This document shows positions 1,091-56,283 of a stretch of DNA of 64,000 bases, in pieces; the stretch's first letter is position 1, and each line of letters opens with the position of its first letter. This DNA comes from Gekko japonicus (Eukaryota), in NCBI RefSeq assembly GCF_001447785.1, contig NW_015173677.1, forward strand, positions 1,666,024 to 1,730,023, in the 5' to 3' direction. The position numbers were made by a program, and so were the translations under genes. Under the pieces are notes generated by a model. It worked only from the letters and a program-made list of their open reading frames with translations, had not been told where the DNA came from and searched no databases.

Positions 1091-1660
1091 GATCCTGCAG
1101 CAAGCAGCTAGGCCTGGGTTAGTCATGCAGGTTGCATGGTATCAGGTTGCCCGGTTACAGCTGGCAAACCTGGCACTGATGCGTCTTCCCTTAGAGGCCA
1201 AAACAGCCCTGGAAAGGATCCTACCCCCATATCTTTTACTATCAGAAACCAAGGTTTGAAGGCTGGCATTACTGCTGTGTTTCCCTATCATCACCCAGGA
1301 TGGCCACTGGGAGGGCTTTCATTTCTTCAAGATACAGGCACTGTTTCTATTATTTTGGGATTAAAAAACCAACAACTCTAGTTTGCATGCTTTAGATCTC
1401 AGATTTTTCAGCAAACCTGGAGCTTTTGTCAGGTTTGTAAAAATATTTGCCTTGTCTGTAATCTCTGGATTGAAGAATCCACACCTTTGGCCATGTAGAG
1501 AAATAGATATATTGATGCATAACCCCTGCAGTGGAATGCAAGACATTCAGTACCCAAAGAAAACATTACAAGGAAGGCAATCAGAAATGTAAGTCCTTCA
1601 TGGTGCCTCACCATGCAACTGGGTCATATTTTTCCTGAGTAGAGACTGCTAGGAGAAGTA

Positions 1661-1869
1661 GGTAAAGGTAAAGGTAAAGGTCTCCCTTGCTCGAAAGCCA
1701 GTCGAATCCGACTCTAGGGTTGCGGTGCTCATCTCCGTTTCAAAGCCGAAGAGCCAGCGCTGTCCGAAGACGTTTCCGTGGTCATGTGGCTGGCATGACT
1801 AAACACCAAGGCGCACGGAACGCTGTTACCTTCCCACCGAAGTGGTACCTATTTATCTACTTGCAATTA
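1661..1869 (-). mobile_element. Sauria SINE, 5'-truncated
   Basis: (GGTAAA)3 is the reverse complement of the (ACCTTT)n tail. The body is near-identical to the 3' part of the full copies at 18283 and 25689. Confidence 0.9.
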
Positions 1870-2381
1870 TAGGGAAAGCTGAAGACAGGGGGCAGATAAA
1901 TGTAGGTTGGCTGTTGGATGGGAAGAGAGGAGAAAGCAGGAAAAGCAAAGAGGTTATGGTTACTTTCTAAGAAGAAGGAAATAGTGGGAGAGTAGAAAAT
2001 GAGATGCTCTTGCAAATAGTTGCAGTTCCCTTTCTTATTCCTTCCTAAAGGAGCAGCCATAAGTTGTGTTCTGGTTAAAAGAACCAGGAAACAGATGAAG
2101 GAATCCATTCCAGCTAGGGATCAGAAAATGACCTGTATTTTGCTTCATTTTATATTAATTTATATTTTTTGCTTTTCACTTTTCCCTGTTAATTTTCTAA
2201 CTATGTTTGTAGTATGTATGCATATTGGATGGTTTTATATGTAGTGTAAATGGTATTTATATGTAAAATCAATGTTGTATATAGATAACAAGATACACTG
2301 TGATTTATTGGTGTATAAATACCTTAGAAATATGAGTCCATTTTACAGAAATCTTCACGGTAAAGAAACAGAAAATGGCAT

Positions 2382-2911
2382 TGTCACGGCTCAGGTGGGG
2401 TGTCACCTGACACTGCCACCACTCTGGTTCCAGGCTCCTCTGAGAAGGCCCAGAGCACCCTCCCAGGCCTTTGGACTTCCCCTTTAGCCGAAATGAGCAT
2501 GAGGACCAGGCAGAATGAACAATGAAAATAGTTTATTTTATAGGAGGTTAAACAAACAAGGTGCAGAATAATAACAGTAAGTGGATAAAAAGAAAAGAAA
2601 TCAAATGCCGTAACACATCTAAATATATACTGTCCCTAGCTCACTATCTCGTGGCCTTAGACTACTTACCCTTCCCTCAGGATGAGGGTTTCTTCCCCAC
2701 AGCAGCCTCTCTTCTGGCCCTGTTCCCTGGGAAGAAGAACAGCTTTTTCTCTTGCACCAGTTCTTTTATTCCCCTGCCCTGTTCCCTATTGGTCAAAATT
2801 GGCACCAAAACGTCTGAAGGCCTTCTGGGGTTTGTAGGCCCAGCCTCCCCTACTGCTAGCCAGGCTCCTTGGGCCTAGTAGGCCTCTGGTGGCACAGCCC
2901 AGATCATGACA
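2382..2911 (-). mobile_element. Solo LTR (Gypsy/ERV-like), 530 bp
   Basis: TGTCACG...CATGACA termini and 5-bp TSD GGCAT (2377-2381, 2912-2916). AATAAA and CCAAT occur on the minus strand. Confidence 0.8.
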
Positions 2912-4287
2912 GGCATGTAAATGAAGAATCACTGGTTCAGTTTCCAGAAGGGAGAAGCAGAATGGAAATGGGTATTTTGTGGGCGCAACAAAAAGTTTGA
3001 GAAATTCAAAATCGTCTGACTGCAGTATTCATCTTCCTTAACTTAATTCTTATGACTGAAGTTTTCTTGTGGATATTAGTATCTGAAAGCCGAATATGAC
3101 TGTATTGTTACCAGAAAAAAACTAACCAGTGTTAACTATTAACCATTAGGATCATTAGTCTGCATTCATGCTGCCTTGAAATTGAATATTGACTAAATAA
3201 AAACCACGGGAGGCAATACCTGCACATCAAAAAGTTGAACAAACTGTTGCAAGTGTTACCATGAATAATCAGATTTCTATTACTTGTGACTGGTTTTTCT
3301 GCTCTCTCCAATTTGAAATGATTGCATATTGGAATCAGTAATAGAGGGATTTTTCAAGTGGAAAATTAGCCAATTTTGTTTTTTAAAACCAAACTGAGCA
3401 AGCAAGATTGAAAGCAGAATAGAATTATTAAGTGTAAAGCAGCAGTTCTTAAGCTGGTTGCAGACTACCATTTGCAAGTATGACTGATAGCAGAATAGTG
3501 TGATTAAGTGAAAACCAGTGAATCTTTAAACTGTGGTCTACAGACTGACAGTGATCTGATCACATTTACAGGCAGTATCCAAGATCAAGACAAAATTCAA
3601 AAGATCAAGTATATTTCAGTGCAGCTGGACTGGTCTCCAGAATAAATGTTAAAGGAGCTCCAGGTCACATACATTGGGTTCTCTTCTCTATTTTATCCTC
3701 CTAAGATGTTTCTGAGGTAGGTAAGGTTAGGCTAAGATGACCCAAGACCAGTCACAATCTCTTAGCCAAACTACTTCACAAATTTCTTGTGAGGATAGAA
3801 TAGAGGGCGGTACACTGTATCTGCCAACAAGAGCTCCCTGGAGTGGCACTGGGTAAAATAGGAAATCTTAATAGCTACTTGTGTAACTATCACTGTCTAG
3901 GAACATGGGTGGTAATGTAATAATGAATAACTGTAGAAGCATGAAAAAAAATATCAACCTTGTGCTGTTATTTCCACCTTAAAAACTGTCATGTAATTAA
4001 GAAATCCCCAGCACAGTGCCTGTGGGAGCCATGGTACCCACTGATATGTTTCTTGATTCTCACTGGTTTTCCCTTCATTGGAGCAGAAGGTGCTCCAGAG
4101 AAGTATAGGATACAGGACCGTGGTATCTTCAGGGAGTACTCATTTAGAAATATCTATCATCAACATATATTTGGTTTTGAGCCTCCCAACACTTCGTTAT
4201 TGTTCTTCTGGTAGTAGCCATTTTGTGCTTGCATCAGTGAAAAAGGCAAACTGTATTGTGAATTACTAAGAGAGGGACTGAGAATGA

Positions 4288-4522
4288 AAGAAGAAGAAGA
4301 AGAAGAAGAAGAAGAAGAAGAAGAAGAAGAAGAAGAAGAAGAAGAAGAAGAAGAAGAAGAAGAAGAAGANNNNNNNNNNNNNNNNNNNNNNNNNNNNNNN
4401 NNNNNNNNNNNNNNGAGGAGGAGGAGGAGGAGGAGGTTGGATTTCGGTTGGGGTCACTTGGGAATCAAACCCAGTTCTCCCAGATTAGAGTCCGCACACT
4501 TAACCACTACACCAAACTGGAC
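4288..4522 (-). mobile_element. Squam3-type SINE (internally deleted) with long (CTT)n/(CCT)n tail
   Basis: tRNA-like head ccagtttggtgtagtggttaagtgtgcggactctaatctgggagaac on the minus strand. The (GAA)n run spans an assembly gap. Confidence 0.8.
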
Positions 4523-4529
4523 TAATATT

Positions 4530-4626
4530 GCAATGCCCTCTGTAAAATTTTGGTTGCCATATCTCAAAATGGATCTTGCAGAGCTATAAAAAGTATAAAG
4601 TATAAAAAAGACAACCAAGATGATTA
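4530..4626 (+). mobile_element. CR1 ORF2 fragment (degenerate)
   Basis: VKFWLPYLKMDLAEL*KV..KKTTKMI matches VQFWSPHLKKDIIALEKVQKRATRMI of the CR1 at 61.8 kb. Confidence 0.6.
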
Positions 4627-7600
4627 CAGCACCTTTTTGCAGACATTTTTAATGATAGAAGGATGATGATTTTATGGATTTTAAATTGAGTATTGTAATA
4701 TGTTTTTAATATTGTAAATCTGCATTAACTGCAGATACATATATGCTGTTACCTTCCTTGAGCCTACAATATGGGCAGGGTGGGCTACAAGTCTAATGAA
4801 ATAAATAAATAAATAATTTTTTGCTTACAAAAGCCTGAAGTGTCTGGTAGGGATGTGTACCTGAACAAAAACATACATGAAAATTACTGTTTTGGGCTGA
4901 TACCATGATTTTCCAGAATGTTAACACAAATCCAGGATATTTAATATGCATATGAACTCAATCTCATCTATGCCTAGTAAAAGAATAAAAACATTGTTGG
5001 AGTTATCAAGATTTGTGAGCCAAAAACCCACACACATTATTTTTGTGCTTTCTAGATTTGGCTTCTCTAATAAACGCAATAAAATATGTTGCAATAAAAA
5101 TAGGCTTCACTCAGAAATAAGAAGTGATTGGGCTGCTATTGTAGCACTGCTATTCTTTCCCCCTCATTATATTTCATAATTACAAGTTACTCATTTCCAG
5201 TTGCAAAAGAATAGATTTTTCTTAATGTGGATCCAATGGATGAATAATAATCTTATCTAAAAGGAAACTCTTCCATGAAAAGTTCCAACTTCTAAAAAAG
5301 TTTCTAGCTCCTTATTGTCACAATGATCTAATGAACATCTAACATTCTGACAAATTTAATATGAGTGTCTTACTATAATAATTTACAGAGCTTACTTGTG
5401 ATGAAAGTGCATGGTAGGACAAAAATAAATTGTGCAGAATGAATCCATTAATGGACTTGCACTTCTGTCCATGTACCAGAACTCATAGAAGGAACTTTCA
5501 ACATTTTTTCACCATTTTTCTAGGTGCCTCCATCCAGTATTTCAGTCAGCCGATGAGTGCTCAAGCTCATGTACTGTTCTCTCTAGTTGTTATTCTTCAA
5601 ACATCACTCCCCCCCTTTTTTCACTCAGCAGAAAACTGAGCAGTCTTCCCCCACTAGTAAGGTATACAGAAGTAGCCATGACTGGCTTGAATCAGTAAAT
5701 CCTGTGCTGCCTTTGTTTTCCCAGAATCTGTGTAATCCTGATCAAAAGTTTAGTGAACATATGTATAATCCACGTACAGTGTACACTTGGTTTTTCTGTT
5801 TATGTCCATGGAATAGTGCTCATGTTACATTCAATGCACGTACGGCTGAAAGTGCGACCCCCCATTCCATTTGTAAAGTGAGTGCACACGGGCTCTTTCT
5901 TACCAAAAGATATATGGATGTTAATGTAGGTTGTACAGGTCTCCATCTGTTACATGTGAACAGAACTTATGCCTCGCCAGAATTCATGACAGATAGCTGT
6001 GTAACAGCATAAATATTCAAAGATGGCAAAGCTGCACCTGTCTGTTATGCACCTGTCACAGGCACAGGATTCCCACATGAACAAAACATTTCTATTTTTT
6101 TGGGCTAGCAGAACTCACTCTACTATTGACCCTGTTCAATAAAAATAGTGCCTATTACAGGTTCTTGTGTGGGTTACTAGACTAGGAACATCCAATGAAA
6201 GGAGAAATTGGAACCCTCAAATAGGACAATATCATTTTACCTCGAGATGTGACAAAGGTTGAAATTAGAGGGCAATGTTTTTGACTGATTTCCCTCAAAG
6301 AGCGCCCTGTATCTCTGCGGTGGAGAAATGCCAGACTATGATTTTTAACAATAGATTGCAGGAGGTTCCCCCCCCCCTCTTATTTATGTTATGGCTTACC
6401 TGGGAAACTGAGGTGCAGCTATGATGTTTCAGGCACTGCTGTTCTGCATTTTACTTTTACAATTTATTTAGTTATGTTGTTTCTGATAAAGAACAGTCTT
6501 TTGCCTCTGTTAGATCTTCACCTCATTTTGTAGAACTTCCCCTTTTCCCATTTCCTTTCCCTTTTTAGTCCAGTATTCAATACAGAGGTGCTGAGAATTT
6601 CAGAGGAAACATGATTGCAGGCTAAGCTTACCTTGATTCAACCCTTTGCTTTTATATGAGTTGAGCCCCTTGCTGGTTGTTGTTCAACATTTAACTCAAA
6701 TACCATACCACACAACTTTACAGCTGTGCAGTAGCCATTTGCAGTAAAAGGCCATGCCATGCCAAGAATTGTCCAGGTTTATTTGCATGTTCGAAATGTT
6801 TCTGTTTCAACATTTCTGCTGCATGGTGGTCACTTTAATATCTCAGTCTCTGTGTCTCTATGCTTCTGTGCATAGTGCTTCCACTTTCTGCCAAATCACA
6901 CCATTTCAATAGCTTTAGACTGGGAGCTCTTTCTGACTCTGTATATTTAAGGGCCCTGTTTGCCAGATCTAGTTAAGAAGCTTGTTGGTCACAGATCTGT
7001 TGGTGACCTCCCTTCCAACCAATCCAAATGTTCATTGCCTTAAATGAAATTTGAATTAGGCATGCTATCAAAGATTTCTTTTTCAAAGAGACTTTTCCAT
7101 ATTCCATTAAAGAAGAGAGTATCTAAAGTATCTAAAGTATAAAGAAGAGAAGATCTAATATCTTCATGCCAATTTGAAAATCATCCTAAATAACGGCTTT
7201 GTTGACTTTATTTAAGTTGTTAGGTGCCCCTTTGTAGTGACACTGGATACATTTTCAACAAACATACACTGGCTTGGCTCCTGTGGCCAATTTCCACAAA
7301 TGGAAGGGACAATTTCATTGATTCCCCTCCACACACTGCAGATCCTCAGTTTGTCCTCATGTTGTTCTTAGGAGCAGTATGTTGGGGAGGGCACAGGCAG
7401 GAAGTAGCATAGAAGTCCTGTTCCACTGACAGAAATGCCTTCTTTTAGAGGAGATTTACCATGGTATCAAAGCCATTGGATGCAAGTGTATACTTTGCAG
7501 AATATGTAGGGGGAAAATCACTAAAGAAATCTACTTTCTGGGAAATGGCATGTGGCAGTGATGCTGGAGATATTTTCTATGGTATAATCTAAAGTGAAAA

Positions 7601-9523
7601 AAACACACAGTCTCAATTTATAATTCTACTGATTCACTTCAGAAGCTGCCTTTTTAAAATACTGACAGAACACAGGAAAAAATAATAATGCTCCTAGCAG
7701 CCAACTTTGCATACTTATGCTACTGGAAGCAAGGTTAAAGATATAAATAGTGATCTTTGTAGAATGCCAGTTCTATAAATATAGGAGAGAAGAGACAACT
7801 TTACATTTTTCTCCTGTCAAGAATAGGTCTTAAATGGATGACAGTATATTAGGCAGATTTTTTAAATGCAACAGCAGTATGCTTGAATGGGCAACAATCT
7901 CCCTATTCTTGGGGAGATATTGAACCAAGACCCAATTATGTCATCATGCTGTTAATAGCACCACTGTTCTCAGAATGATGTTGTATCTTGAATTATCTTA
8001 AATGGGACAGATGATTGGCTTAATGTCCCATGCAGAGCAGCATATAGCAGTACAATGACCATTCTAAGGGCCATATCACAGAAGCATTTTCATAGCCTCT
8101 GGAAAATGAAACAAAGGCTCAGTTATAGAAATGTGGCCAGATCACTTGCTAAAGAGAGACCAAAATAAAGCTGGACATTATTAGTAAAGGGAGATACTCC
8201 ATTCTGGAATTCCAAGCATCTGCGTATAGTTTGCTCAGTCCCTAAATTGGAAAAAAAAAATGAGCCCAAACTGAAGTAGATAAATCTTTTGGAGGGAACA
8301 TTTAAAACAAAAACAAAAACATGGCAACCATAGTAACCAAACAACACACGTTTTACATGTTGCCATTTTTATACGAAGCAATATACTGTAACCTTGGGAT
8401 ATTTTAACTTGCAATATTTATGTATTCCTTAATGTTCCCCTTTACAATGCCAATAAAAGTATGATGATGATGATGATGACACAAGTCTTGGCTCTCATAA
8501 AATGCCATTATATACAAAACTGGGACTCCAGACAGAAATGAAAATCCTAAATATCAGTCTTCTTTTCATGTCTCATAAGCAAAGGGCATCTAGCCATTCA
8601 AAAGTATGGACAGGCACTCTAAAACGTAGCGTAACCCTACTAGATACATAGTTGGGGCAGATCTGGGTCTCCTAGTTTGAACACGGTAGTCCATGTATTG
8701 CTAGCTCCACACTAGAAAATATAAGGAATATTTGAACCCTTCAGAATGGTTATATGATGTTAAAGAAGAAGTTGTGGGGTGCAACCAGGGGCTGGAGAGA
8801 CAGAAGTGGTGGTTTGGTTTTGTTCTGAAGTTTTTCAAATGTAGAAATGTCTTCCTAAACAAAATTAATTTGAAATCTTTTGCTCCATTGCCCACTACTC
8901 TTTCACTTGCTTCTTAATGATCATATGGCACATTTATATAAAAGGATATAACCTCTCTATGCAAATCAGAAGGAAAATGAGGAAAATGTGGTGAATTAAG
9001 TAAGTTTGCTGTATACATTTAAAAGAAACAAACTGCCTTGATTATAACATTACAGTCCTTCGATTTTGCAGCTTATTCTACCATATTGTCTTCCAAATCT
9101 ACTTCTTCAGTACCTGCCTGGATTTTCTAATGCATTATTTTTCAATTTTCACCTTCACCCCTTATTCATGGCACAAATACTTGTCAGGTGCCTTTCTTTG
9201 TGGTTAACATCTCATGTACATTTTCAGTTTTAAAAGAAAGTCTGTCTTTTGCAAACTCTGGTCTTCAGAAGTGTCCCAGCTCCAACCCTGGCATATTTTT
9301 TTCCACTGGATGAAATAGNNNNNNNNNNNNNNNNNNNNNNNNNNNNNNNNNNNNNNNNNNNNNNNNNNNNNNNNNNNNNNNNNNNNNNNNNNNNNNNNNN
9401 NNNNNNNNNNNNNNNNNNNNNNNNNNNNNNNNNNNNNNNNNNNNNNNNNNNNNNNNNNNNNNNNNNNNNNNNNNNNNNNNNNNNNNNNNNNNNNNNNNNN
9501 NNNNNNNNNNNNNNNNNNNNNNN

Positions 9524-9780
9524 GGATTTATACCACACCCTTCACATGGAGTCTCAGAGCGGCTTACAAACTCCTTTCCCTTCCCCTCCCCACAACAGAC
9601 ACCCTGTGAGGTGGGTGGGGCTGAGAGAACTCTGACACAAACTGTTCTTTTTCAAGGACAGCTGTGCCAGAGCTTGTGACTGACCCAAGGTCACATCAGC
9701 AGGTGCAAGTGGAGGAGTGGGGAATTAAACCCGGTTCTCCCAGATTAGAGTCCGCGCACTTAACCACTACAAACCACTAC
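9524..9780 (-). mobile_element. Squam3-type SINE
   Basis: Reverse complement of the copy at 38548. The tail lies in the N gap. Confidence 0.85.
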
Positions 9781-11334
9781 ATGCAAACATTAAAGCCCTG
9801 GTTAATATTCCTAAACACAAGAGGCACATTTAAGCACATGAATAACATCTATCTAACCCCGCTGAAGTCAATGAACTTAGAAAGGTGTCACTCTACTTAG
9901 GATGGCACTATTGGGGCATACTAAAAGTCAATGGGAGAAAGTTAAAAATGGTTGGTGGGGAAAAGCTTAATTTTTTCCACCATGTACTTCTTCATGCAGA
10001 AAGGACTTCTCCTAATGTTGATGTTCTGTACAGATACCAAGGCTTTTCCACTCACACTTTATTTCCCTAAATTTCCCAACAAGAATGAATGTGTGAGTCT
10101 TCCATGAAGGATTCTATGTTGCTTAGTTTTTAAATAAAATTTCTCAGAATTGCAGTTTTTTCATTTTAAAAAGTCTGGCTTTTATAATGTCAGAGATAAA
10201 TTTTATTTGTTTGTTCATTTATTCAGTATACATAAAGATCATCTTCTCTTTCTCTAAAAACACCAAATGTGTAATAGGAGCATTTTTATATCATCCATCT
10301 TGTTTAAGCAAGGAACCTTTAAGATGATACTCAGAATGAGTATGGTGTAATGATTAGAATGACAACACAGTATTAAGGAGATCAAGGTTCTAATCACTGT
10401 TCAGCCCAAGCTGAGTTATTGGGAGATTTGGACCAATCATTCTTTCTCAGCCTAGCCTTCCTCTTAGGTTTCTATGAGTACAAATGTTTACACAGGGCAA
10501 ATGCTGCTAACCTCACATTGGGACACTGTACCAAATTCTGGTAACAAAATGTATTCATTTAACAAGCATTTGACCTCACAGACTTAGCAAGAGTAGAAAG
10601 TCTTAAAGTGTAAATGCTTGGGCCAGGCTGCATATCCCATCCCACAACCTTTGAATCACCAAGGAAAAGTCCTCAGGAAATTCTGCCCTGTGGACTTTCA
10701 CATTCCCTACTAGGGGAATGTGACCTCCCGGAATGGTCGGAAAGAAGCTGATTTTTGAGAGGGCAGTATGTCAGCTATGCTGCCATGGGGGGTGGGGAGT
10801 TCATTCTGTGTCTTGGTAATTGCTATTGCATTCCTATCTTTGCTGTTCTGCCTGTGCTGAAATGCTTATCTCTACAGATGTGCAGGAGGAGGTTGTACTG
10901 TCTGGAAGTCTCCTATGTACCGTGAGAGACTACTGCTTCCCAGCTTTCGCCACCTAACGGTTTCCTAGCTGGTCCCGCGCACGGGAGGGTAGCTAATTGA
11001 CCCATGCCATTGGGTGTGTGTGTGTGCATACGAATGCCCTATATCCTATTATGCTCAATGGGTTGCCGCCATTCTTAACAGTGCCTGTGTTACTGCATCT
11101 ATAGCTTTGCAATAAAAGTATAACCGTTCCTGAATGGCTTTCCTACAGCATCCTGCTTAATTTATGCACATCCTGAATTGTTTTTTCTTCTTTTTCTGTG
11201 ACCTTTCTCAAACCTTCTTTGCTGTGAAGTTTTGGGCAAGATATGAATTGCTGTCATATGCACGGGGAAGTTTTCCCTGATACTATCTGTGCCCTCACCA
11301 TTTCTTTCCTCAACCACCTGAGGGGATTGTTTTA

Positions 11335-22880: not shown

Positions 22881-23657
22881 TGGGAATGTTTACAGCCAAC
22901 AACAACAGTCATTTCCCAACAGCCATTTCATATTGTTATTTATATACTGTCTCGTTGAAATCTAATTTATGGAAGGAAGGAGGCAGAATTTCTAATAAAT
23001 AAACATAAATCTATGAATGCTCACAAAACATTAGACTGCATTTTAAGGGATAGTTTTCAACACAGCACTAAACATGTGATTTTTACAAATAATTCTGAGA
23101 TTTTATTTGCTGCCTATGATATAAAATGGTTCCACCCACCCACATACTTCCTATGTTGATAACTGCATGCTGGATTTTTTTTAATATATGGCAGAAAGAG
23201 TATAAGACTTATCTATTATTTCCTTTCAAAAGCAGATAAGGGTATTTTCCACTGCAATGTGCTCTTTTCCCTCCCTCTGATAAAGTTATGAATTTAATGA
23301 TAACTTCATGAAACGTTACATATGCAGTCAACGCATCAGTGTGGATCTTGCAGACTAAACATCATGATATGGCAGGTCAAATAGCTTCAGGAAGTCAAAG
23401 TGGGCATCAGATTTAGATTTGGATCAGCTCTTCTAATGTTTCTGAGCTCTTTTCAACATGACACATGGCTATTAGTCCGCCTCCACTATACATCATTCAA
23501 ACATTTCTGGTGATAGTTCAAAACAGGTTCTGCTTGTGGCCTCTTTCGAAGGTTTAAAATGAAAGTAAGTTAGAAAATGAATCCCATTTAGTCCACTATT
23601 CAACCTAATCCTGATCTTCTAAGCCCATTAATTTAAATGGATTTAGAAGAATGCAAC

Positions 23658-27281: not shown

Positions 27282-27370
27282 ACAGTGGAATCCAAAGAAG
27301 AGTTACACTATTCTAAGCCCATTGTCTTCAATGGACTTAGAAGGATGTAACTCCACTTAGGATTGTACTG
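27282..27370. repeat. ~88-bp palindromic MITE-like repeat
   Basis: cagtggaatcc..gagttaca..ttctaagcccattg / caatggacttagaa..tgtaactc..ggattgtactg. Relatives lie at about 9845-9910, 23600-23882 and 29367-29450. Confidence 0.75.
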
Positions 27371-30815: not shown

Positions 30816-32621
30816 CTCACTTTTTCACTTACTGTACAGTGGTTCAGATGTTTTCATGGAAGCTACTGCTAAAAATTGTGTAGAAATTTAATATGAATGT
30901 AAGCTCCTAACTGCAAAACGTAATGACTCCCCTCCTGTTCATCCCCAGAGCTTCAGAATTCTTTGGTATCCATTGATGTGTGTTGTTTGAAATGGTGTTA
31001 CAAGAAAGTTGGGGAACTACATTGCAATTGGAAAAATACTGCATTATCCAAGACAATTAAACTGAAGAAAGAGCTATATGGCTTAGAGTTTCAGACATCC
31101 TTCACTAAGTATAACTGCTAGGAGGGGTTTGTACTCATAATAAGAATGAGAGGTTCATGTATTTTACCTATTTAGATGAAGTGAAGGTTCTGTCCTTTAG
31201 AAATGCATAATCAGTCTCAAAAATGCACACTGTGGTACTCTGTTCAGTTCAGTTAGGTATCCAAGGAAGTGCTATCAGTTGTGATTCTGCCTCCAAATTA
31301 CCTCTCGTGTTAAAAATCACCATCTTGAACATCTTATATATTTAATTAGATTTTAAAAGATGCATAATAATTCAATTACCATCTCAGTGTGACAACTTAT
31401 GGTCCTTTGATCAACCTAGAATAATTTGAAAAGCCTTGATAAATTGCAGTGAGAGTCTTTGGGAGGGACTCCCCTCCATCCCAGCCTGCATATCTTCTTT
31501 AGAGGTAACATGTAGACTGACCCTGGGACCTCCCACCTCTGCCTGATAGTTCAATTAACCTGAGAACTGTTAGGAAGGAAAGGCTTGTGATAGTGACAGT
31601 TAGTTTTGATGAAACCCAGGATTTCTAGCTTTACAAGGGACATTCTGAATGCGAGTGAGGAGTGAATCTTTTTCTGATCATTTATATATTTATCAGTCTT
31701 TCTGCTCTTTGTCTTTCACTGCTGGTTTTGTACATTTGTTTGTATAATGTATCAGTTTATACATGAAGTATATAGTATCAATATATTGCTTTTACATATA
31801 CATGTCAGGGAACCTGCAAGGACTTGGGGGGTGAATGACTCTTTCCTTTCCCCAAGTATTTTCTCTTTCCTTTACTTGAAAGCCACCATAGCCTCTCCTC
31901 CTTTCCTGCTTCCTTCTCTGCTTCTCATCCGTCAGCCAACCTACCTTTATCTTCACCCAACTTCAGTTTTCCACTCTACCCTATCTCAGCACTCTCTGCA
32001 TAGGAAAGCTATGGCCCAGTTCTGCTGTGCCAGTTGCCCTGGCTGGCCCAGCTGCACAGTGGGGAACCTGCAAAGACTTCCAAGAGACACTGCATTTCCC
32101 CCTGTCTCAACCTCTCCACACTATTTCCTCTTTNNNNNNNNNNNNNNNNNNNNNNNNNNNNNNNNNNNNNNNNNNNNNNNNNNNNNNNNNNNNNNNNNNN
32201 NNNNNNNNNNNNNNNNNNNNNNNNNNNNNNNNNNNNNNNNNNNNNNNNNNNNNNNNNNNNNNNNNNNNNNNNNNNNNNNNNNNNNNNNNNNNNNNNNNNN
32301 NNNNNNNNNNNNNNNNNNNNNNNNNNNNNNNNNNNNNNNNNNNNNNNNNNNNNNNNNNNNNNNNNNNNNNNNNNNNNNNNNNNNNNNNNNNNNNNNNNNN
32401 NNNGGAAGCCGCCCGTTGGGTAGGCCGGGGGAGGCATTTAAATGCCTCCCCAATCGTTCCAGCCCCCCCCCCGCCCACCTGCTTCAGAGTCGCCAGGGGG
32501 GTCGCTCTTCAGGCCTTCCTTCTGTAGCCACGCATGCAGAGGTTTTGGCTGTAGTGGGCGTGGCCAGCTCTGAAGCCAGCCGGAACTCCATTCCTGTGCG
32601 TTCCTGCCCAAAAATAGCCCT

Positions 32622-38448: not shown

Positions 38449-39044
38449 CTGGTGGTAGTGGAAAGTGCTATCAAGTTGCAACTAACCTATGGCAATCCTG
38501 TAGGTTTTTCAAGGCAAGAGACAAATAGAGGTGGCCTGTTTGGTGTGAAGAGCCAGTTTGGTGTAGTGGTTAAGTGTGTGGACTCTAATCTGGGAGAACC
38601 GGGTTTGATTCCCCACTCCGGCACTTGCACCTGCTAATGTGACCTTGGGTCAGTCACAAGCTCTGGCACAGCTGTCCTTGAAAAAGAGCAGTTTGTGTCA
38701 GAGTTCTCTCAGCCCCACCCACCTCACAGGGTGTCTGTTGTGGGGAGGGGAAGGGAAAGGAGTTTGTAAGCCGCTCTGAGACTCCAAGTGAAGGGCNNNN
38801 NNNNNNNNNNNNNNNNNNNNNNNNNNNNNNNNNNNNNNNNNNNNNNNNNNNNNNNNNNNNNNNNNNNNNNNNNNNNNNNNNNNNNNNNNNNNNNNNNNNN
38901 NNNNNNNNNNNNNNNNNNNNNNNNNNNTGCATAGCAACCCTGCACTTCCTTGGTGGTCTCCCATCCAAGTACTAACAGGGCTGACCCTGCTTAGCTTCTG
39001 AGATCTGATGAGATCAGGCTGGGCTGGGCCATCCGGGTCAGGGC
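38449..39044 (-). mobile_element. 5S rRNA-derived SINE with RTE-type tail, interrupted by a Squam3 SINE and a gap
   Basis: The minus strand of 39044-38928 matches 5S rRNA (gatctcagaagctaagcagggtc..gttagtacttggatgggagacc; A and C boxes). The tail cataggttagttgcaacttgatagcact resembles an RTE 3' end. Confidence 0.8.
38548..38796 (+). mobile_element. Squam3-type SINE
   Basis: Canonical head and body. The tail lies in the N gap. Confidence 0.9.
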
Positions 39045-39790: not shown

Positions 39791-40260
39791 GGCCCCGGTC
39801 ACACGGGAGGTTTTGCCCCGCAAGAGGGACAGATCGGGGGTGCATCAAATGGGCGTGATCACACAGCAACATCTGGGAAGCGGAGCGTACCCGTCCCCGA
39901 TCCGTCCTTTCTGGGCGAAACCGCGCATTAAGAAAAAAACCTAGGAAAGAGTACTACCTACCTGAAGCTCCACAGCAAGGACAGCCATGGGATAGCCGGC
40001 ACGCCCATCTTCCGCAGCATTCAATGCTCCCGGCCAAACTGCGCATGTGCACACATGCGCAGCNNNNNNNNNNNNNNNNNNNNNNNNNNNNNNNNNNNNN
40101 NNNNNNNNNNNNNNNNNNNNNNGGCATCTGATCGTGCCGGGGAGCAACTGCGCGGCGGCTCGAGGGATCTGTCTGATCCTTCCGCTGCGCGTTTATTTTG
40201 CTGCGGCTCAGAAAAGCCATGCTTTGGCCGTGCTCCCCCCCCCCCTGTGTGACCGGGGCC
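39791..40260. mobile_element. PIF/Harbinger MITE, young
   Basis: Perfect 14-bp TIR GGCCCCGGTCACAC / GTGTGACCGGGGCC, TTA TSD (39788-39790, 40261-40263), and undecayed CpGs. Confidence 0.9.
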
Positions 40261-50844: not shown

Positions 50845-51220
50845 AACAATGCCAGGCCCCCAGTGGCATTGGGGGATACCAGCTCCCATTTCCTGCTGCT
50901 GCTCTAAGAAGAAAAATCACATAAAAATGGCTATCAGGCCTATGGTGTGATGTCACTTCTAGGGAAACACCAAAAGTGATGTCATGCCTCTCTAGGAATT
51001 GCTGGGAACTCTAGCATAGAGTTGCCTGCAATTCTCAGAGAGCTGTGATGTCACTTCTGGGCTTTCCCTAGAAATGTCCTCTTTAGGAATTGCTGAACAC
51101 TTCATGGTTATACCATAGAGTTTCAGTGATTCTTAGACAGGCATGACACAACTGTCAGGGATTTCCCAGAAGTGATGTCATGCCATCCTACAAGTCTCTT
51201 GCTGGTTTCCAACCCTTGGT
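50845..51220. repeat. Degenerate palindromic repeat (tgatgtcacttc units), probably an old MITE related to 30402/33270
   Basis: Alternating gtgatgtcacttct / aagtgatgtcatgcc / taggaattgctg..aactc units. Confidence 0.55.
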
Positions 51221-52595
51221 AAACACCTGTGCATAGAAGTTCATTAAGTAATAGGAGTCACATGTTTTGCCTTCAGAGTATACATATAAAAGACAGAGAA
51301 TTTTACTGCTCAGAAAAGTTAGTTTGAACCTCAACATGCTTGTGAGCATTTACTTCAGGTCAACAAAGTATGTGAAACTGTGCTGGCCCACACTAAATGT
51401 TTAAAAGGATGTGGCTGTAGGCAACCAGTATGCTGTCAGCTGTCAGGTACATCCATTGCACCCAGCCAATTCTGCCCTAAGACCTATGGAACCTGTAAAC
51501 AATAATATTGTGCTCTAATTTCCCCCCAGTTCAGTGGTCTGTGTTGTCTTTCTCTCCCTTTCCTTCTGTCACCGCTCCAGGCACAAATCATCCACCATTA
51601 TTTTACTAGCTACATTGTAGTATACTGTCTTTCTTTGAAACTCATTTGACTATTAGTACCAAAATCTGTTTTTGTGAGAACTGTTGGATAATCTCACCTA
51701 TAAACTGCGATATAAATCTTGAGTTGATCAATGTGTGGACATCTTCTGTAAACAGATAAAATACAGTATTCCTTATTGCATTTGACAAGTTCTATTAAAT
51801 TATATATTTAGTCAGCCCTCCTCTTCTAACAAGGTTGACTCTCATTCATGCTTAACTGAATACGGGAAAGCCATTTATATAATTTATTAAATCAGAAGAG
51901 TTCCATCCTAATTTCCAATTGGGACTAGAGTAAATTTCATCATTTATGGACACCTCCTTAGCAATTTGTATGGACTCCCAATCTTGTTTTCTGAAAACAG
52001 ATCTTCAACCCACCCCCACCCCTGCACATTTTGCATGGACAAGAGCAGTGCAAAAGATATTGTGCGCATCAGGGAAATGCTGGAATAATTGTGGCTAATA
52101 TGAAGACTTCCTAGATTATTTCAGATCTCTGCAACAAACAGGATGCAATACAACCTGCTTTCTTGACAGCAGTAAGAACTTCTTAGTAGGAATTTCTCTT
52201 GAATAACTGTGTGGTAGGGCAGCACTATTTGCTAATTCTCTAGGTGCCTCTCTGGATGGCATATTTCAGATATTCAGTTCAATGTCTCTTCCTTGTCCCA
52301 TCTGAACATCCTCTTTCACCTGAAGTGCATTTGTCTGCATAAGTGATGTTGATTTGTGAGTTCTGACTTTAAATAATAACCTACTTAAAGCTATTTATTT
52401 TCAAATGCCCAATGGCACATAAGGCACACCACACTGCAATATATTTGTGTTTCATTGTGTTAATGTAATTAACATTTTAATAAAATTTCAATCAGAATAA
52501 TCTGTCAGAGAAACACATGCTGATTTAATTTCTGCTGGATTCTCTTTAGCTTACTAATGTGTCATACTAGGAATAAAGTGGCAGTAGACTACAAG

Positions 52596-53151
52596 CAAGC
52601 AAGAAAAAAAATATGATTCATAAGTCCTATTGAAAGTAATGAGACTTAGCAGTGACTGTGTGCTGGTGTTCTGATGATTTCGATGTGTTAGACTTGCAGG
52701 GGGAAATTATCCAACACATTTGTCCTTTCTGGCTCCATAACAGATTTCTGTAGGAAATTTACTTACTGACTGACTTGGAAACAATGTAACAGCTGAACAT
52801 AGGTGGAGAGTGTAACTTCCATAATGTACCAGCACAGACGCATCTAGTGGCTTTTGGGAAATGTGGAAACCTCCTTGTAAATTAACACATCTTACAGCTG
52901 TTGATTTTGCCAGAATCTGTATCTGCTATATTTGAGGCAGCCCAACTGCCCTGCAGACAATAGGATAGGGGAGGATGAAGGCATCGACAAGACAGTGTCC
53001 AAGGGAACCTTACTTATTTAGGATCAAAGTTAGCATGCCAAAGACTGGTAGCCCAGCCAGGTATTGCCTTGGTGTGCTTTGCATGCGAAGCAGCCTAATT
53101 TAATAAGAAACTCTGCAAGTGCAAAGTCTCACTGGTGAGTACTTTTGTCTT
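52596..53151 (+). repeat. Left arm of long inverted repeat
   Basis: Reverse complement of 53662-54212, differing by about six substitutions and one 5-bp indel by eye. Confidence 0.97.
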
Positions 53152-53290
53152 AAACATAGAAACTCGGGGTACAGCAATAGAGTACAGTAAATACAGAGTA
53201 AATTGCTGAAAAAGTTCACTAAGATATATACAAAAATATTCAATGAAAAATATTCAAATTTCCATGATGTAATTTAATACTTGTTGTTAG

Positions 53291-53581
53291 TATGTTGGAC
53301 AAACATCTAGGGCTTTGCGGACCCGTATATTAGAACACAGATCGAAGTTAAAACATAAATGTATGACAGCTCCCATGGCCCAGCATTTTGAGGAGGCCGG
53401 TCATGGCCCCAATGATTTCAGATGTCTAGTTTTGGAGGTAGTGAGACCTAAACCTTACATGTATGTTGATATGCAAAAATTGCTGATACAAAGAGAAGCG
53501 TTTTGGACTTTTGTATTAAAAACTGAACAACCTTGTGGACTGAATGCTGCCCTTGACTTATCATGTTTTTTAGGAGAGTAA
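53291..53581 (+). mobile_element. Penelope-like element GIY-YIG endonuclease C-terminal fragment
   Basis: YVGQTSRALRTRILEH...QHF...LEVV...REAFWTFVLKTEQPCGLN has the YIG motif, the catalytic R/E/H pattern and the terminal GLN typical of PLE endonucleases. The GIY half is missing. Confidence 0.9.
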
Positions 53582-53661
53582 ACATTGGATCTCTATTTGA
53601 TATATCTCTCTCTCCCTGTACCATTGTGGGGTTCTTTCATTGTAATTATAAAATTTCTGGC

Positions 53662-54212
53662 AAGACAAAAGTACTCACCAGTGAGACTTTGCACTTGCAG
53701 AGTTTCTTATTAAATTAGGCTGCTTCGCATGCAAAGCACACCAAGGCAATACCTGGCTGGGCTACCAGTCTTTGGCATGCTTACTTTGATCCTAAATAAG
53801 TTCCCTTGGACACTGTCTTGTCAATGCCTTCATCCTCCCCTGTCCTATTGTCTGCAGGGCAGTTGGGCTGCCTCAAATATAGCAGATACAGATTCTGGCA
53901 AAATCAACAGCTGTAAGATGTGTTAATTTACAAGGAGGTTTCCACATTTCCCAAAAGCCACTAGATGCGTCTGTGCTGGTACATTATGGAAGTTACACTC
54001 TCCACCTATGTTCAGCTGTTACATTGTTTCCAAGTCAGTAAGTAGGTAAATTTCCTACAGAGATCTGTTATGGAGCCAGAAAGGACAAATGTGTTGGATA
54101 ATTTCCCCCTGCAAGTCTAACACATCGAAATCATCAGAACACCAGCACACAGTCACTGCTAAGTCTCATTACTTTCAATAGGACTTATGAATCATATTTT
54201 TTTTCTTGCTTG
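53662..54212 (-). repeat. Right arm of long inverted repeat
   Basis: Reverse complement of 52596-53151. Confidence 0.97.
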
Positions 54213-56283
54213 TTGTCAACAGGTTGAATATCACACTTAGTAAGAACTGTAGCATTACTAATATTCTCAAAAACCAATCCTGTGCTATATAAACTACCTG
54301 GCATCAAACCAGCCAAATAAAAATTAAAAGTAAAACATATCTCACTTTTGGTTGTAGATGGTATTTCTCCATTTATTTAATAAATCAGAGTGGGTCCAGG
54401 AGTATTCATATTTGGTTTGGTTCAGGGTGATGGGGTGGGGATGTTCAAATGACTTTGTCATGCTTAAATCTTGTTCCTCAGTCATACAGAAAGCTAAAAT
54501 GTATGGAATTGCAATTATGAAACAAGAAATAACTTGTATTTGCTAGGGAATATTTTGAGTAATTAAATATCTCCATTAATTAATGATTACTCTCCAGGGA
54601 GGCTAACCTTGAAAACATTCATTCTTCCCTTCTTCCAGTCTTTGCCTTTAACTGTCCTAGCTTTTAGGATTATACACCCTTCAACTTTGGCTCTTTTGCT
54701 ATTTTCTTCTAAGAGGCTTTTCTATAGTTGTGCTTTGATTTTCTTCAGCATTCTGTGTCATCTGACATGTTACCCATCTAGCATCTCCTTTTGTTAATAT
54801 GGGAAGTGATGGCATTCTACCAAATGTTTGAATTCTCCGGAGAACCTTACAGTGGCTTCTATAGTACACAAGGGTTTGTGTGCATTATTTTTTTCTTGGG
54901 GGAGCCTGCTGTGAATTTTGTGAAGAGGTGGTAGGTTTTCATACTCTCCCTGTTCTGTAATTTTACATAGAATCTTGGAATTTTCCCCATTATAATTCTT
55001 TTTTCTGAAAGCTGTTTCATTTGCTAATAGGTTAAACTTGTAAACTTAAGCAGCAGAAGTGGTGAAAAAGTTGTTGCTGTCCCTGTTTGCTGCTCTAAAA
55101 AGGAAAGTAAATTCTGACTTTTCCACTTGCCCTTTGAAATATTTGTCAATTTTAAGAAGTCACCATATGAGGGACTTGCTTCTCTGTTGGTAGCATTTTC
55201 CTCCTTTGATCCAGAAACTTTGAATTAAAAGTCTTTCTTTAAAATCACAAGCATGGGGGTTGCATCATCATCCAGATATCTTGGAATTTTGGAAGCTGGC
55301 AACATCAAACATACCTTTGTTAAGAAAAAGACAACCAAGGAGTACTACCAAACAGTTAAAAAGATATTGTGAACAAAATTAAATGGAGGCAACATGGTAA
55401 GGGCAATTAACACACAGGCAGTCCCAGTTCAAAGGTATACAGATGGCATCATCAGCTGGAAACAAGCAGAATTTGAAGCAATGGATCACAAAACTTGTGA
55501 GATAATGATGATGCATCACTCACTATATCCTAGAAGTGATGTTTACTTACCAATAAAATTAGGTGGAAGAGGTGTCCTGAAAGTTAAGCAAGCAGTTGAA
55601 GAAGAAAAATGAGCACTGAATGACTACATCAAGAAAAGCAAAGAGAAGCTTCTATTATACAAAGAAGACTTATTTAAGGTTACAGAAACCAAAGAACATT
55701 TAAAAAGATTGCAATCAAAACTCACTTTGACAACTGGAAATAAAAGCACTTGCATGGGCAACATTTGAAAGACATAGAGAACAAAGTTGATAATGAAAAA
55801 ACCTGGAAGTGGCTCCAAAATGGGCACCTGAAGAAACAAAGAATTCATTCTAGCTGCACAAGACCAGGCACTCAAAATGAATACTACACAAGCCAAGATT
55901 CAGAAGACCAGTGATGACAGCAAATGTTCACTTTGCAAGAAAAGGGATGAAACGGTTGAACACATGATCGGTGTCAGCAGTAAAATTACTCAACCTGACT
56001 ATAAAAAACATCATGATAGAGTTGCAACTCTGTTACACTGGAATCTTTGCAGAAAGGATGGCTTACCATCACCCAGAAATTAATGGGAGCAAAAACCGGA
56101 TAAGATAATGAGAATGATAAAACAAAGATTCTTTGGGACTTTGGGACAATTGCAAACAGATAAACACCTGGAGTATAACACCCCTGCTATCACAATTGTT
56201 GAAAAAAATGAGAAATAGGGTTTGGATCATTGACATGGCAATCCCAGAAACAGAAGAACAGAAAAGAAAGAACAGGAGAAGAT

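Follow-up and report, generated by a model that had tools for sequence, protein, structure and literature searches.

An inverted duplication of host DNA around a chimeric Penelope-containing insert in Gekko japonicus, plausibly formed by fold-back copying at a chromosome break

In a 64-kb stretch of the Gekko japonicus genome (contig NW_015173677.1, positions 1,666,024–1,730,023; hereafter the window, with all coordinates counted from its first letter), positions 52596–54212 hold two near-identical arms of host DNA in inverted orientation around an insert that includes a fragment of a Penelope-like element (PLE). Comparison with three related organisms indicates that one arm is the ancestral host sequence and that the other arose from it as a new inverted copy, together with the insert. 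We put the probability at roughly 0.55 that the locus records one complex insertion or repair event where a chromosome had broken, with a probable tie to Penelope reverse transcription of a non-canonical kind. Among the papers searched, none described a duplication of flanking host DNA in inverted orientation linked to Penelope; the arrangement is, as far as found, novel for Penelope-like elements, and a kindred scar is known from human L1.

Results

Related organisms carry one arm and no insert

Logan contigs of three organisms (A, B and C) were placed on positions 51200–55600, where the flanks differ from the window by about 0.7–2.7% in organism A and by about 3–8% in B and C. In A and in B, a single contig follows the left flank to 52595, continues with letters that have no match in the window (716 in A, 697 in B) and resumes at 53657, from where it is colinear with the window across the right arm and beyond it in the right flank. 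In organism C, two contigs break off and start at the same two positions, the unmatched letters numbering 379 and 369. No second, inverted copy of the arm is present in any of the three sets of contigs, whose matches to the left flank end at 52595, and in all three the depth of the arm equals that of the flanks (75, 11 and 12, respectively).

Because A, B and C all carry the right arm colinear with the right flank, and none carries the left arm or the insert, the right arm is host DNA in its ancestral, single-copy state. Before the event, the order ran from the left flank through about 700 bp and the five bases CTGGC to the right arm and right flank. By the same comparison, the left arm and the 505-bp insert (together 52596–53656) are new in the lineage of the window, where they stand in for the roughly 700 bp of host DNA that was lost; the event may be fixed or polymorphic.

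An earlier note, made from the letters of the window alone, had taken the arms for host DNA rather than for the pseudo-long terminal repeat (pLTR) of a PLE, and had suggested looking for a unique arm beside a multi-copy spacer and for an empty orthologous site. Both were found. The arms stand at flank depth and A, B and C each hold the orthologue of the right arm, whereas the spacer reaches a depth of 1,500–11,000, in organism A only; the site in A, B and C has the right arm in place and neither the left arm nor the insert. The opposite outcome, in which the arm sequence would follow the GIY-YIG fragment in many other copies, is contradicted by the placement of the contigs. The note's broader proposal, that an insertion copied flanking host DNA in inverted orientation, is partly borne out, in that the right arm corresponds to the ancestral flank and the left arm to its new inverted copy.

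The arms form one inverted pair with few differences

A repeat search of the window returned two inverted pairs, 52596–53008 with 53800–54212 (413 nt, 99% identity) and 53012–53151 with 53662–53801 (140 nt, 99% identity), which together make up one inverted pair of 556 and 551 nt that is broken up by a 5-bp indel. Left and right arms are 98.0% identical across 556 columns by blastn. Their alignment contains six substitutions in total (left/right positions 52746/54062, 52763/54045, 52768/54040, 52966/53842, 52985/53823 and 53031/53782) and the single indel, which comprises 53007–53011 of the left arm and is absent from the right arm after about 53799–53802. The alignment bears out the count made earlier by eye. 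Within the 64-kb window, blastn detected neither arm a further time.

When the 1,617 nt of the locus were folded as RNA, the predicted energy was −1160 kcal/mol, compared with −389 kcal/mol for a shuffled sequence. In this fold, 548 of the 556 bases of the left arm pair with the right arm, in perfect runs of up to 197, 150 and 120 bp, and by predicted folding the locus would give a 1.6-kb hairpin-forming product. The double-stranded stem that the earlier note had suggested as a candidate ADAR or endo-siRNA substrate would form, by this prediction, if the locus were transcribed.

The differences between the arms were polarised with the 17 substitutions of organism A against 53657–54278. The left arm matches the outgroup at 54062, where organisms A, B and C carry the base A, and at the indel, where GTAAG follows 53799 in organism A; the right arm matches organism A at 54045, 54040, 53842 and 53782; and 53823 lies in a deletion of organism A, so its state gives no polarity. 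Since the outgroup state sits in the left arm at some sites and in the right arm at others, both copies appear to have changed after they separated, by about 1.1% altogether. Substitutions accumulate at roughly 1e-9 per site per year, and the divergence of the arms would correspond, as a rough estimate, to several million years. The Penelope piece lies at a similar distance, 1.7%, from the contig of organism A that is closest to it.

The insert appears to be a chimera of two repeat pieces

The right-hand part of the insert contains an open frame of 96 codons (53291–53578) followed by a stop codon at 53579–81. Against 1.84 billion representative proteins, a whole-library HMMER search with this fragment gave 598 matches, always on the last ~94 residues of the matched protein and at 48% identity or less, and the long matches among them bear RVT_1 and GIY-YIG domains. 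A profile built from 22 proteins with reverse transcriptase (RT) and GIY-YIG domains matched with an E-value of 2e-35 at profile positions 511–605 of 605, with nothing upstream of about 53285; Pfam GIY-YIG reached an E-value of only 0.005, under the family cut-off. A word-based search with the 96-residue fragment returned no near-identical proteins, a result of little weight given that it covered a length range of only 53–168 residues.

Translation, protein matches and profile thus agree with the stop-free C-terminal GIY-YIG fragment that had been noticed at 53291–53581. It corresponds to the C-terminal two-thirds of the GIY-YIG endonuclease domain of a PLE, with a 5′ truncation and with the native stop as its end. 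The combination of RT and GIY-YIG in one open reading frame (ORF), which marks a Penelope-like origin, is seen in the relatives of the fragment; here the RT part is missing through the 5′ truncation.

In organism A this piece is multi-copy, with a summed contig depth of 3,000–3,500 compared with 75 in the flanks and one contig 98.3% identical to it, yet at an identity of at least 80% it is almost absent from B and C, which marks the family as young. No other copy of the spacer or of the Penelope protein occurs within the 64-kb window.

Downstream of the stop, contigs of other copies still cover 53604, and contigs of host DNA resume at 53657. Of the 80 bp of 3′ sequence described earlier, element sequence does follow the stop, but only for 75 nt, the last five bases (CTGGC) being ancestral host DNA. 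No hammerhead or other Rfam family was detected in 51500–55500, even at E ≤ 10, in keeping with the earlier remark that the arms lack a hammerhead. In a PLE of the anole lizard, reverse transcription begins about 111–118 nt within the next ORF, and normal copies end with a whole pLTR, a hammerhead and a ‘tail’ (PMC11167929). By that standard the gecko piece would lack a canonical 3′ end, although the consensus of its own family may differ from the anole element.

The left-hand part of the insert, segment A, differs from the Penelope piece in composition and copy number. The GC content of 53152–53290 is 27%, compared with 40% for the Penelope piece, and the summed depth of segment A in organism A is about 11,000 against 75 in the flanks. 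RNA reads from other copies of segment A diverge from the window before 53150 and after 53285; the Penelope contig of 98.3% identity has 37 further letters to the left of 53291, none of which lie on the window; and segment A has no match to the profile of 22 PLE proteins. Both repeats are transcribed in organism A. Taken together, the insert reads as a chimera of two internal repeat pieces, 134 bp of segment A and a 366-bp 3′ piece of Penelope. The ~140 bp between arm and fragment had been described as AT-rich and unassigned; they are AT-rich, but can now be assigned to a separate, very high-copy repeat.

We also considered whether segment A might be upstream coding sequence of the same element. 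One matched protein (P0006) aligned weakly over 30 codons more (NC*KSSLRYIQ against NCCKQSLR-IQ, 53201–53290). This extension was rejected: the 22-protein profile stops, the GC content falls from 40% to 27%, and other copies diverge at 53285–53291.

The joints carry little shared sequence

At the joint between left arm and segment A (...TTTTGTCTT / AAACATAG, with a slash for each joint here and in Table 1), other copies of segment A likewise have TT before AAACATAG, which gives an overlap of 2 nt (AA/TT). At the right joint (...ATAAAATTT / CTGGC / AAGAC), five host bases lie ahead of the first duplicated base. In other transcripts, the sequence upstream of segment A reads ...TGGCAAGAA (also given as ...GAAGTGTGGCAAGAA), and eight letters of those transcripts, TGGCAAGA, are identical to 53658–53665, the first host bases to the right of the insert; this match may be the guide of a template switch or may be due to chance (rough p of 0.01–0.05). 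At the outer joint (...GACTACAAG / CAAGCAAGAAAA), two CAAG units end the copy and the template alike and the flank supplies a third, so that the join looks blunt, beside a short repeat. The features of the locus are collected in Table 1.

Table 1 Features of the inverted duplication and its insert (window coordinates)
Feature	Position	Strand	Description
Outer junction	52592–52603		CAAG / CAAGCAAG; end of the left flank meets the copy's far end; loss of about 700 bp of host DNA
Left arm	52596–53151	−	New inverted copy of host DNA 53662–54212; retains the ancestral GTAAG, later lost by the right arm
Segment A	53152–53285		134-bp internal piece of an AT-rich, very high-copy repeat; neighbours here differ from those of other copies
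Penelope-like fragment	53291–53581	+	Last 96 codons of the RT/GIY-YIG ORF from the YVGQT motif, with native stop; 5′-truncated within the endonuclease domain
Element 3′ sequence	53582–53656	+	75 nt after the stop; no hammerhead or recognisable pLTR; ends straight on host DNA
CTGGC	53657–53661	+	Ancestral host bases between insert and duplicated stretch; uncopied in the left arm; contigs of A, B and C resume at 53657, repeat begins at 53662
Right arm	53662–54212	+	Host DNA, ancestral and single-copy, template of the duplication; since then A>G at 54062 and a 5-bp deletion

The stretch 52596–54212 contains no Ns. The window as a whole has five N runs of irregular length, from 45 to 270 (4370–4414, 9319–9523, 32134–32403, 38797–38927 and 40064–40122); the assembly is scaffolded, probably from short reads, and this matters for the trust to be placed in any repeat structure within it.

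Surroundings and transcription

The contigs of A, B and C all hold about 73–74 extra letters at 54278, and the window is thus ~74 bp short at this point. The loss lies 66 bp beyond the duplicated arm's outer end; it may have been part of this event or a separate deletion.

The outer ends of the arms had been thought to contain a copy of the core of a local palindromic miniature inverted-repeat transposable element (MITE). A motif at 54159–54187 does loosely resemble the palindromic cores at 27314 and 23620, with a local score of 19 compared with 11.4 ± 1.7 for shuffles; but the core of 27314 was not found in the arm ends within three mismatches, and 54159–54187 showed no fold signal above shuffles. 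The motif is at most an old relic inside host DNA. The two cores themselves (23620–23645 and 27314–27339; TAAGYCCATTG...CAATGGRCTTA) are palindromic and MITE-like, and none would be expected by chance.

RNA was sampled as about 3% of one run of organism A. Reads fell only on the two repeat pieces and on a repeat at 55169–55600, and none fell on 51200–53110 or 53699–55168, so that arms and flanks had none; because organism A lacks the hairpin, this run could not show hairpin transcripts. Nor did the sample support an expressed exon behind the splice acceptor proposed at 51580. The repeat at 55169–55600 is very high-copy in A, B and C (summed depth 800–17,000), occurs in the RNA as well and has many internal skip variants among its copies.

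Discussion

The layout before and after the event is shown by the comparison, as are the nature of the pieces and their orientation; from these we infer a resected end, an RNA intermediate, an order of template switches and an enzyme as follows. The bottom strand of the right-hand end of a break, single-stranded through 5′ resection, would have served as primer. Part of a Penelope RNA would then have been copied from a non-canonical internal start by a reverse transcriptase, most probably one belonging to the active Penelope family, after which the nascent strand would have jumped to a second repeat RNA, that of segment A. The new 3′ end would then have snapped back on its own strand, 5 nt inside host DNA and with the 2-nt AA/TT overlap, and copied outward 551–556 nt of host DNA along its own resected strand. 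Finally, the copied end would have been joined, essentially bluntly and at the CAAG repeat, to the left-hand end, minus about 700 bp. The same fold-back, if it landed inside the complementary DNA (cDNA), would yield the usual head-to-head Penelope pairs; here the landing point would have been the target.

The orientation of the locus suits priming from the ancestral arm, in that the 3′ side of the element lies towards it and the new copy lies on the 5′ side. Orientation and 5′ truncation also suit reverse transcription, while a diagnostic 3′ end is lacking and the target to the left of the nick was lost with the deletion. Between the two mechanisms that the earlier note had offered, template switching onto the target fits the layout of ancestral arm, element piece and inverted copy.

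Several observations weigh against this account. The outer junction shows no microhomology that was used, three CAAG units being present where two would be expected. Canonical target-primed insertion is not what the locus displays: there is no pLTR, no hammerhead and no stretch of about 115 nt from the next ORF, only 75 nt following the stop. The passage of the insert through RNA belongs to the reading rather than to the observations, and the sequence would suit a DNA-templated origin just as well; the polymerase that copied the host DNA is likewise assumed. The pattern of arm differences would also be expected of two alleles in a heterozygous animal, and the structure is known from an assembly alone, one of the gapped scaffold type.

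The most serious competitor, which we hold to be possible but considerably less probable, is DNA-templated repair with no reverse transcription, through the microhomology-mediated switches of break-induced replication or fork stalling and template switching (MMBIR/FoSTeS) or through templated insertion during end joining, with first one or two distant repeat copies and then the other strand of the end's own flank as templates. Both repeat pieces are internal and carry no canonical element end, the arm/segment A joint has its overlap of 2 nt and the outer joint its CAAG repeat, and fold-back inverted duplications at breaks are well known (PMC3907307; PMC11724301). Yet the 64-kb window holds no further copy of either repeat that could act as a nearby template; the 3′ side of Penelope faces the arm from which priming would have started and the 5′ truncation within the ORF is cDNA-like; and the Penelope family is young and transcribed. 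A history of two events would have a fold-back palindrome with a tiny spacer form together with the ~700-bp deletion, and its centre break later and be patched with repeat filler, or the same in reverse order. Palindromes with short spacers are unstable, and the insert precisely fills the space from the new arm's inner end to CTGGC. We nevertheless regard this history as unlikely, given that it needs two rare events at one spot, that the divergence of the arms (1.1%) is close to the distance of the Penelope piece from its nearest copy (1.7%), and that the intermediate form was seen in none of A, B and C.

An assembly artefact, in which the left arm would be the second allele of the right arm, misplaced in inverted orientation, with the gap filled by repeat reads and the true ~700 bp lost, seems to us similarly improbable. 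The earlier note had held that the differences between the arms argue against such an error, an argument that is not decisive by itself, since two alleles would look alike; the five irregular N runs are of the kind usual in short-read scaffolds, the spacer is made of two high-copy pieces unrelated to each other, and the joints are known from the assembly itself. Against this, four chimeric joints would have to be made with no long shared sequence (overlaps of 0–4 nt), something assemblers rarely do, read-pair scaffolding would set a second allele in direct rather than inverted orientation, and the whole of 52596–54212 is free of Ns. Very improbable, finally, is an ordinary 5′-truncated Penelope insertion whose arms would be its own inverted pLTR or DNA transduced from the 3′ side of a donor locus, even though PLEs often bear an inverted partial copy on their 5′ side (PMC8557442; PMC3846280). 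The arms have single-copy depth, compared with thousands for the Penelope piece; three organisms without the insert have the right arm at the same position, colinear with its flank; and no hammerhead was detected. We ruled out a pLTR on the ground that the inverted repeat is host DNA orthologous in A, B and C and not the element's own sequence. The 3′ read-through or transduction that the earlier note had also entertained was ruled out as well: transduced DNA would be expected in direct orientation, 3′ of the element and from another locus, whereas here the flank of the target itself follows the element on the 3′ side, and the extra copy is found on its 5′ side, inverted. Nor is there the short target-site duplication expected of a canonical Penelope insertion, about 700 bp of the target being missing instead (697 letters in B, 716 in A). 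A Foldback- or MITE-type transposon was excluded on similar grounds, with single-copy arms, one arm alone in three organisms and no target-site duplication at the ends.

Non-canonical Penelope reverse transcription with fold-back onto the target has its closest precedents in human L1, where every step finds a parallel and for which template-switched chimeras, target deletions, local inverted duplications, templated DNA from near the site, and foldback junctions with cDNA after hyper-resection and self-annealing have been reported (PMC11702581; PMC7058536). As in those local rearrangements, host DNA adjacent to the break is doubled in inverted orientation here, with retro-sequence in the middle joining the host segments; there is a deletion and no target-site duplication, and the insert is a chimera from two sources. 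The annealing of a resected, reverse-transcribed end to itself was likewise proposed for L1. The L1 cases differ in being somatic (tumours and cultured human cells), in carrying poly(A) and an endonuclease motif, and in having foldbacks that double whole chromosome arms, whereas the gecko duplication is small (556 bp), closed and apparently inherited through the germline, and involves a Penelope-like element with no diagnostic 3′ end. In twin priming, the source of 5′-inverted L1 copies, element sequence rather than host flank is inverted and the target-site duplication is kept. The gecko locus shares with it an inversion linked to a retroelement and the use of both break ends, but it is the flanking host DNA that has been inverted.

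Among Penelope-like elements, head-to-head pairs are typical (PMC8557442), inverted structures have been ascribed to self-priming (PMC3846280), and the protein of the lizard element cleaves and extends both strands (PMC11167929). Canonical insertions (PMC8557442; PMC3846280; PMC11167929) resemble the present one in having a 5′-truncated RT/GIY-YIG piece bracketed by an inverted repeat, and self-priming or fold-back copying is the suspected origin of those repeats. The gecko locus departs from them in that its repeat is host DNA, in that pLTR, hammerhead, ‘tail’ and target-site duplication are all lacking, and in that a piece of an unrelated repeat is fused to the element. Fold-back duplications at double-strand breaks, constitutional in humans (PMC3907307) and in yeast (PMC11724301), offer a third parallel: the 3′ end pairs with the resected strand it belongs to and copies it, inverted copies enclose a spacer, and DNA is lost on the opposite side. 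In those cases the spacer is host DNA from between the arms. The gecko locus has a 505-bp foreign repeat spacer that would have been added before folding, and its duplication is short and was joined again to the chromosome it came from.

Hairpin-RNA and microRNA-like genes draw their raw material from inverted duplications of host DNA, which are also fragile sites. The origin of small ones in animal germlines is seldom visible. At this locus the ancestral state is kept in three relatives, so that the template arm, the loss and the gain can be read; it is a single locus, well resolved against its relatives, with a mechanism that is plausible and unproven. If the reverse-transcription reading is wrong, it would still be a well-resolved natural case of fold-back repair with templated filler. 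It is conceivable, though we would not expect it, that Penelope-like reverse transcription in the gecko lineage recurrently snaps back on its target and so builds kilobase palindromes of host DNA. Were this true, it would amount to a transposon-driven germline route to long-hairpin loci, as sources of double-stranded RNA, endogenous small interfering RNA or ADAR substrates, and to exon-damaging palindromes, and the present locus would be its cleanest example because no element sequence is duplicated. If the reverse-transcription reading is right, the typical head-to-head copies of Penelope-like elements would be explained by fold-back copying of the nascent strand, and the class of rearrangements associated with retrotransposition, recorded so far from human L1 in tumours and cell culture, would come to include Penelope-like elements and variation inherited in a reptile.

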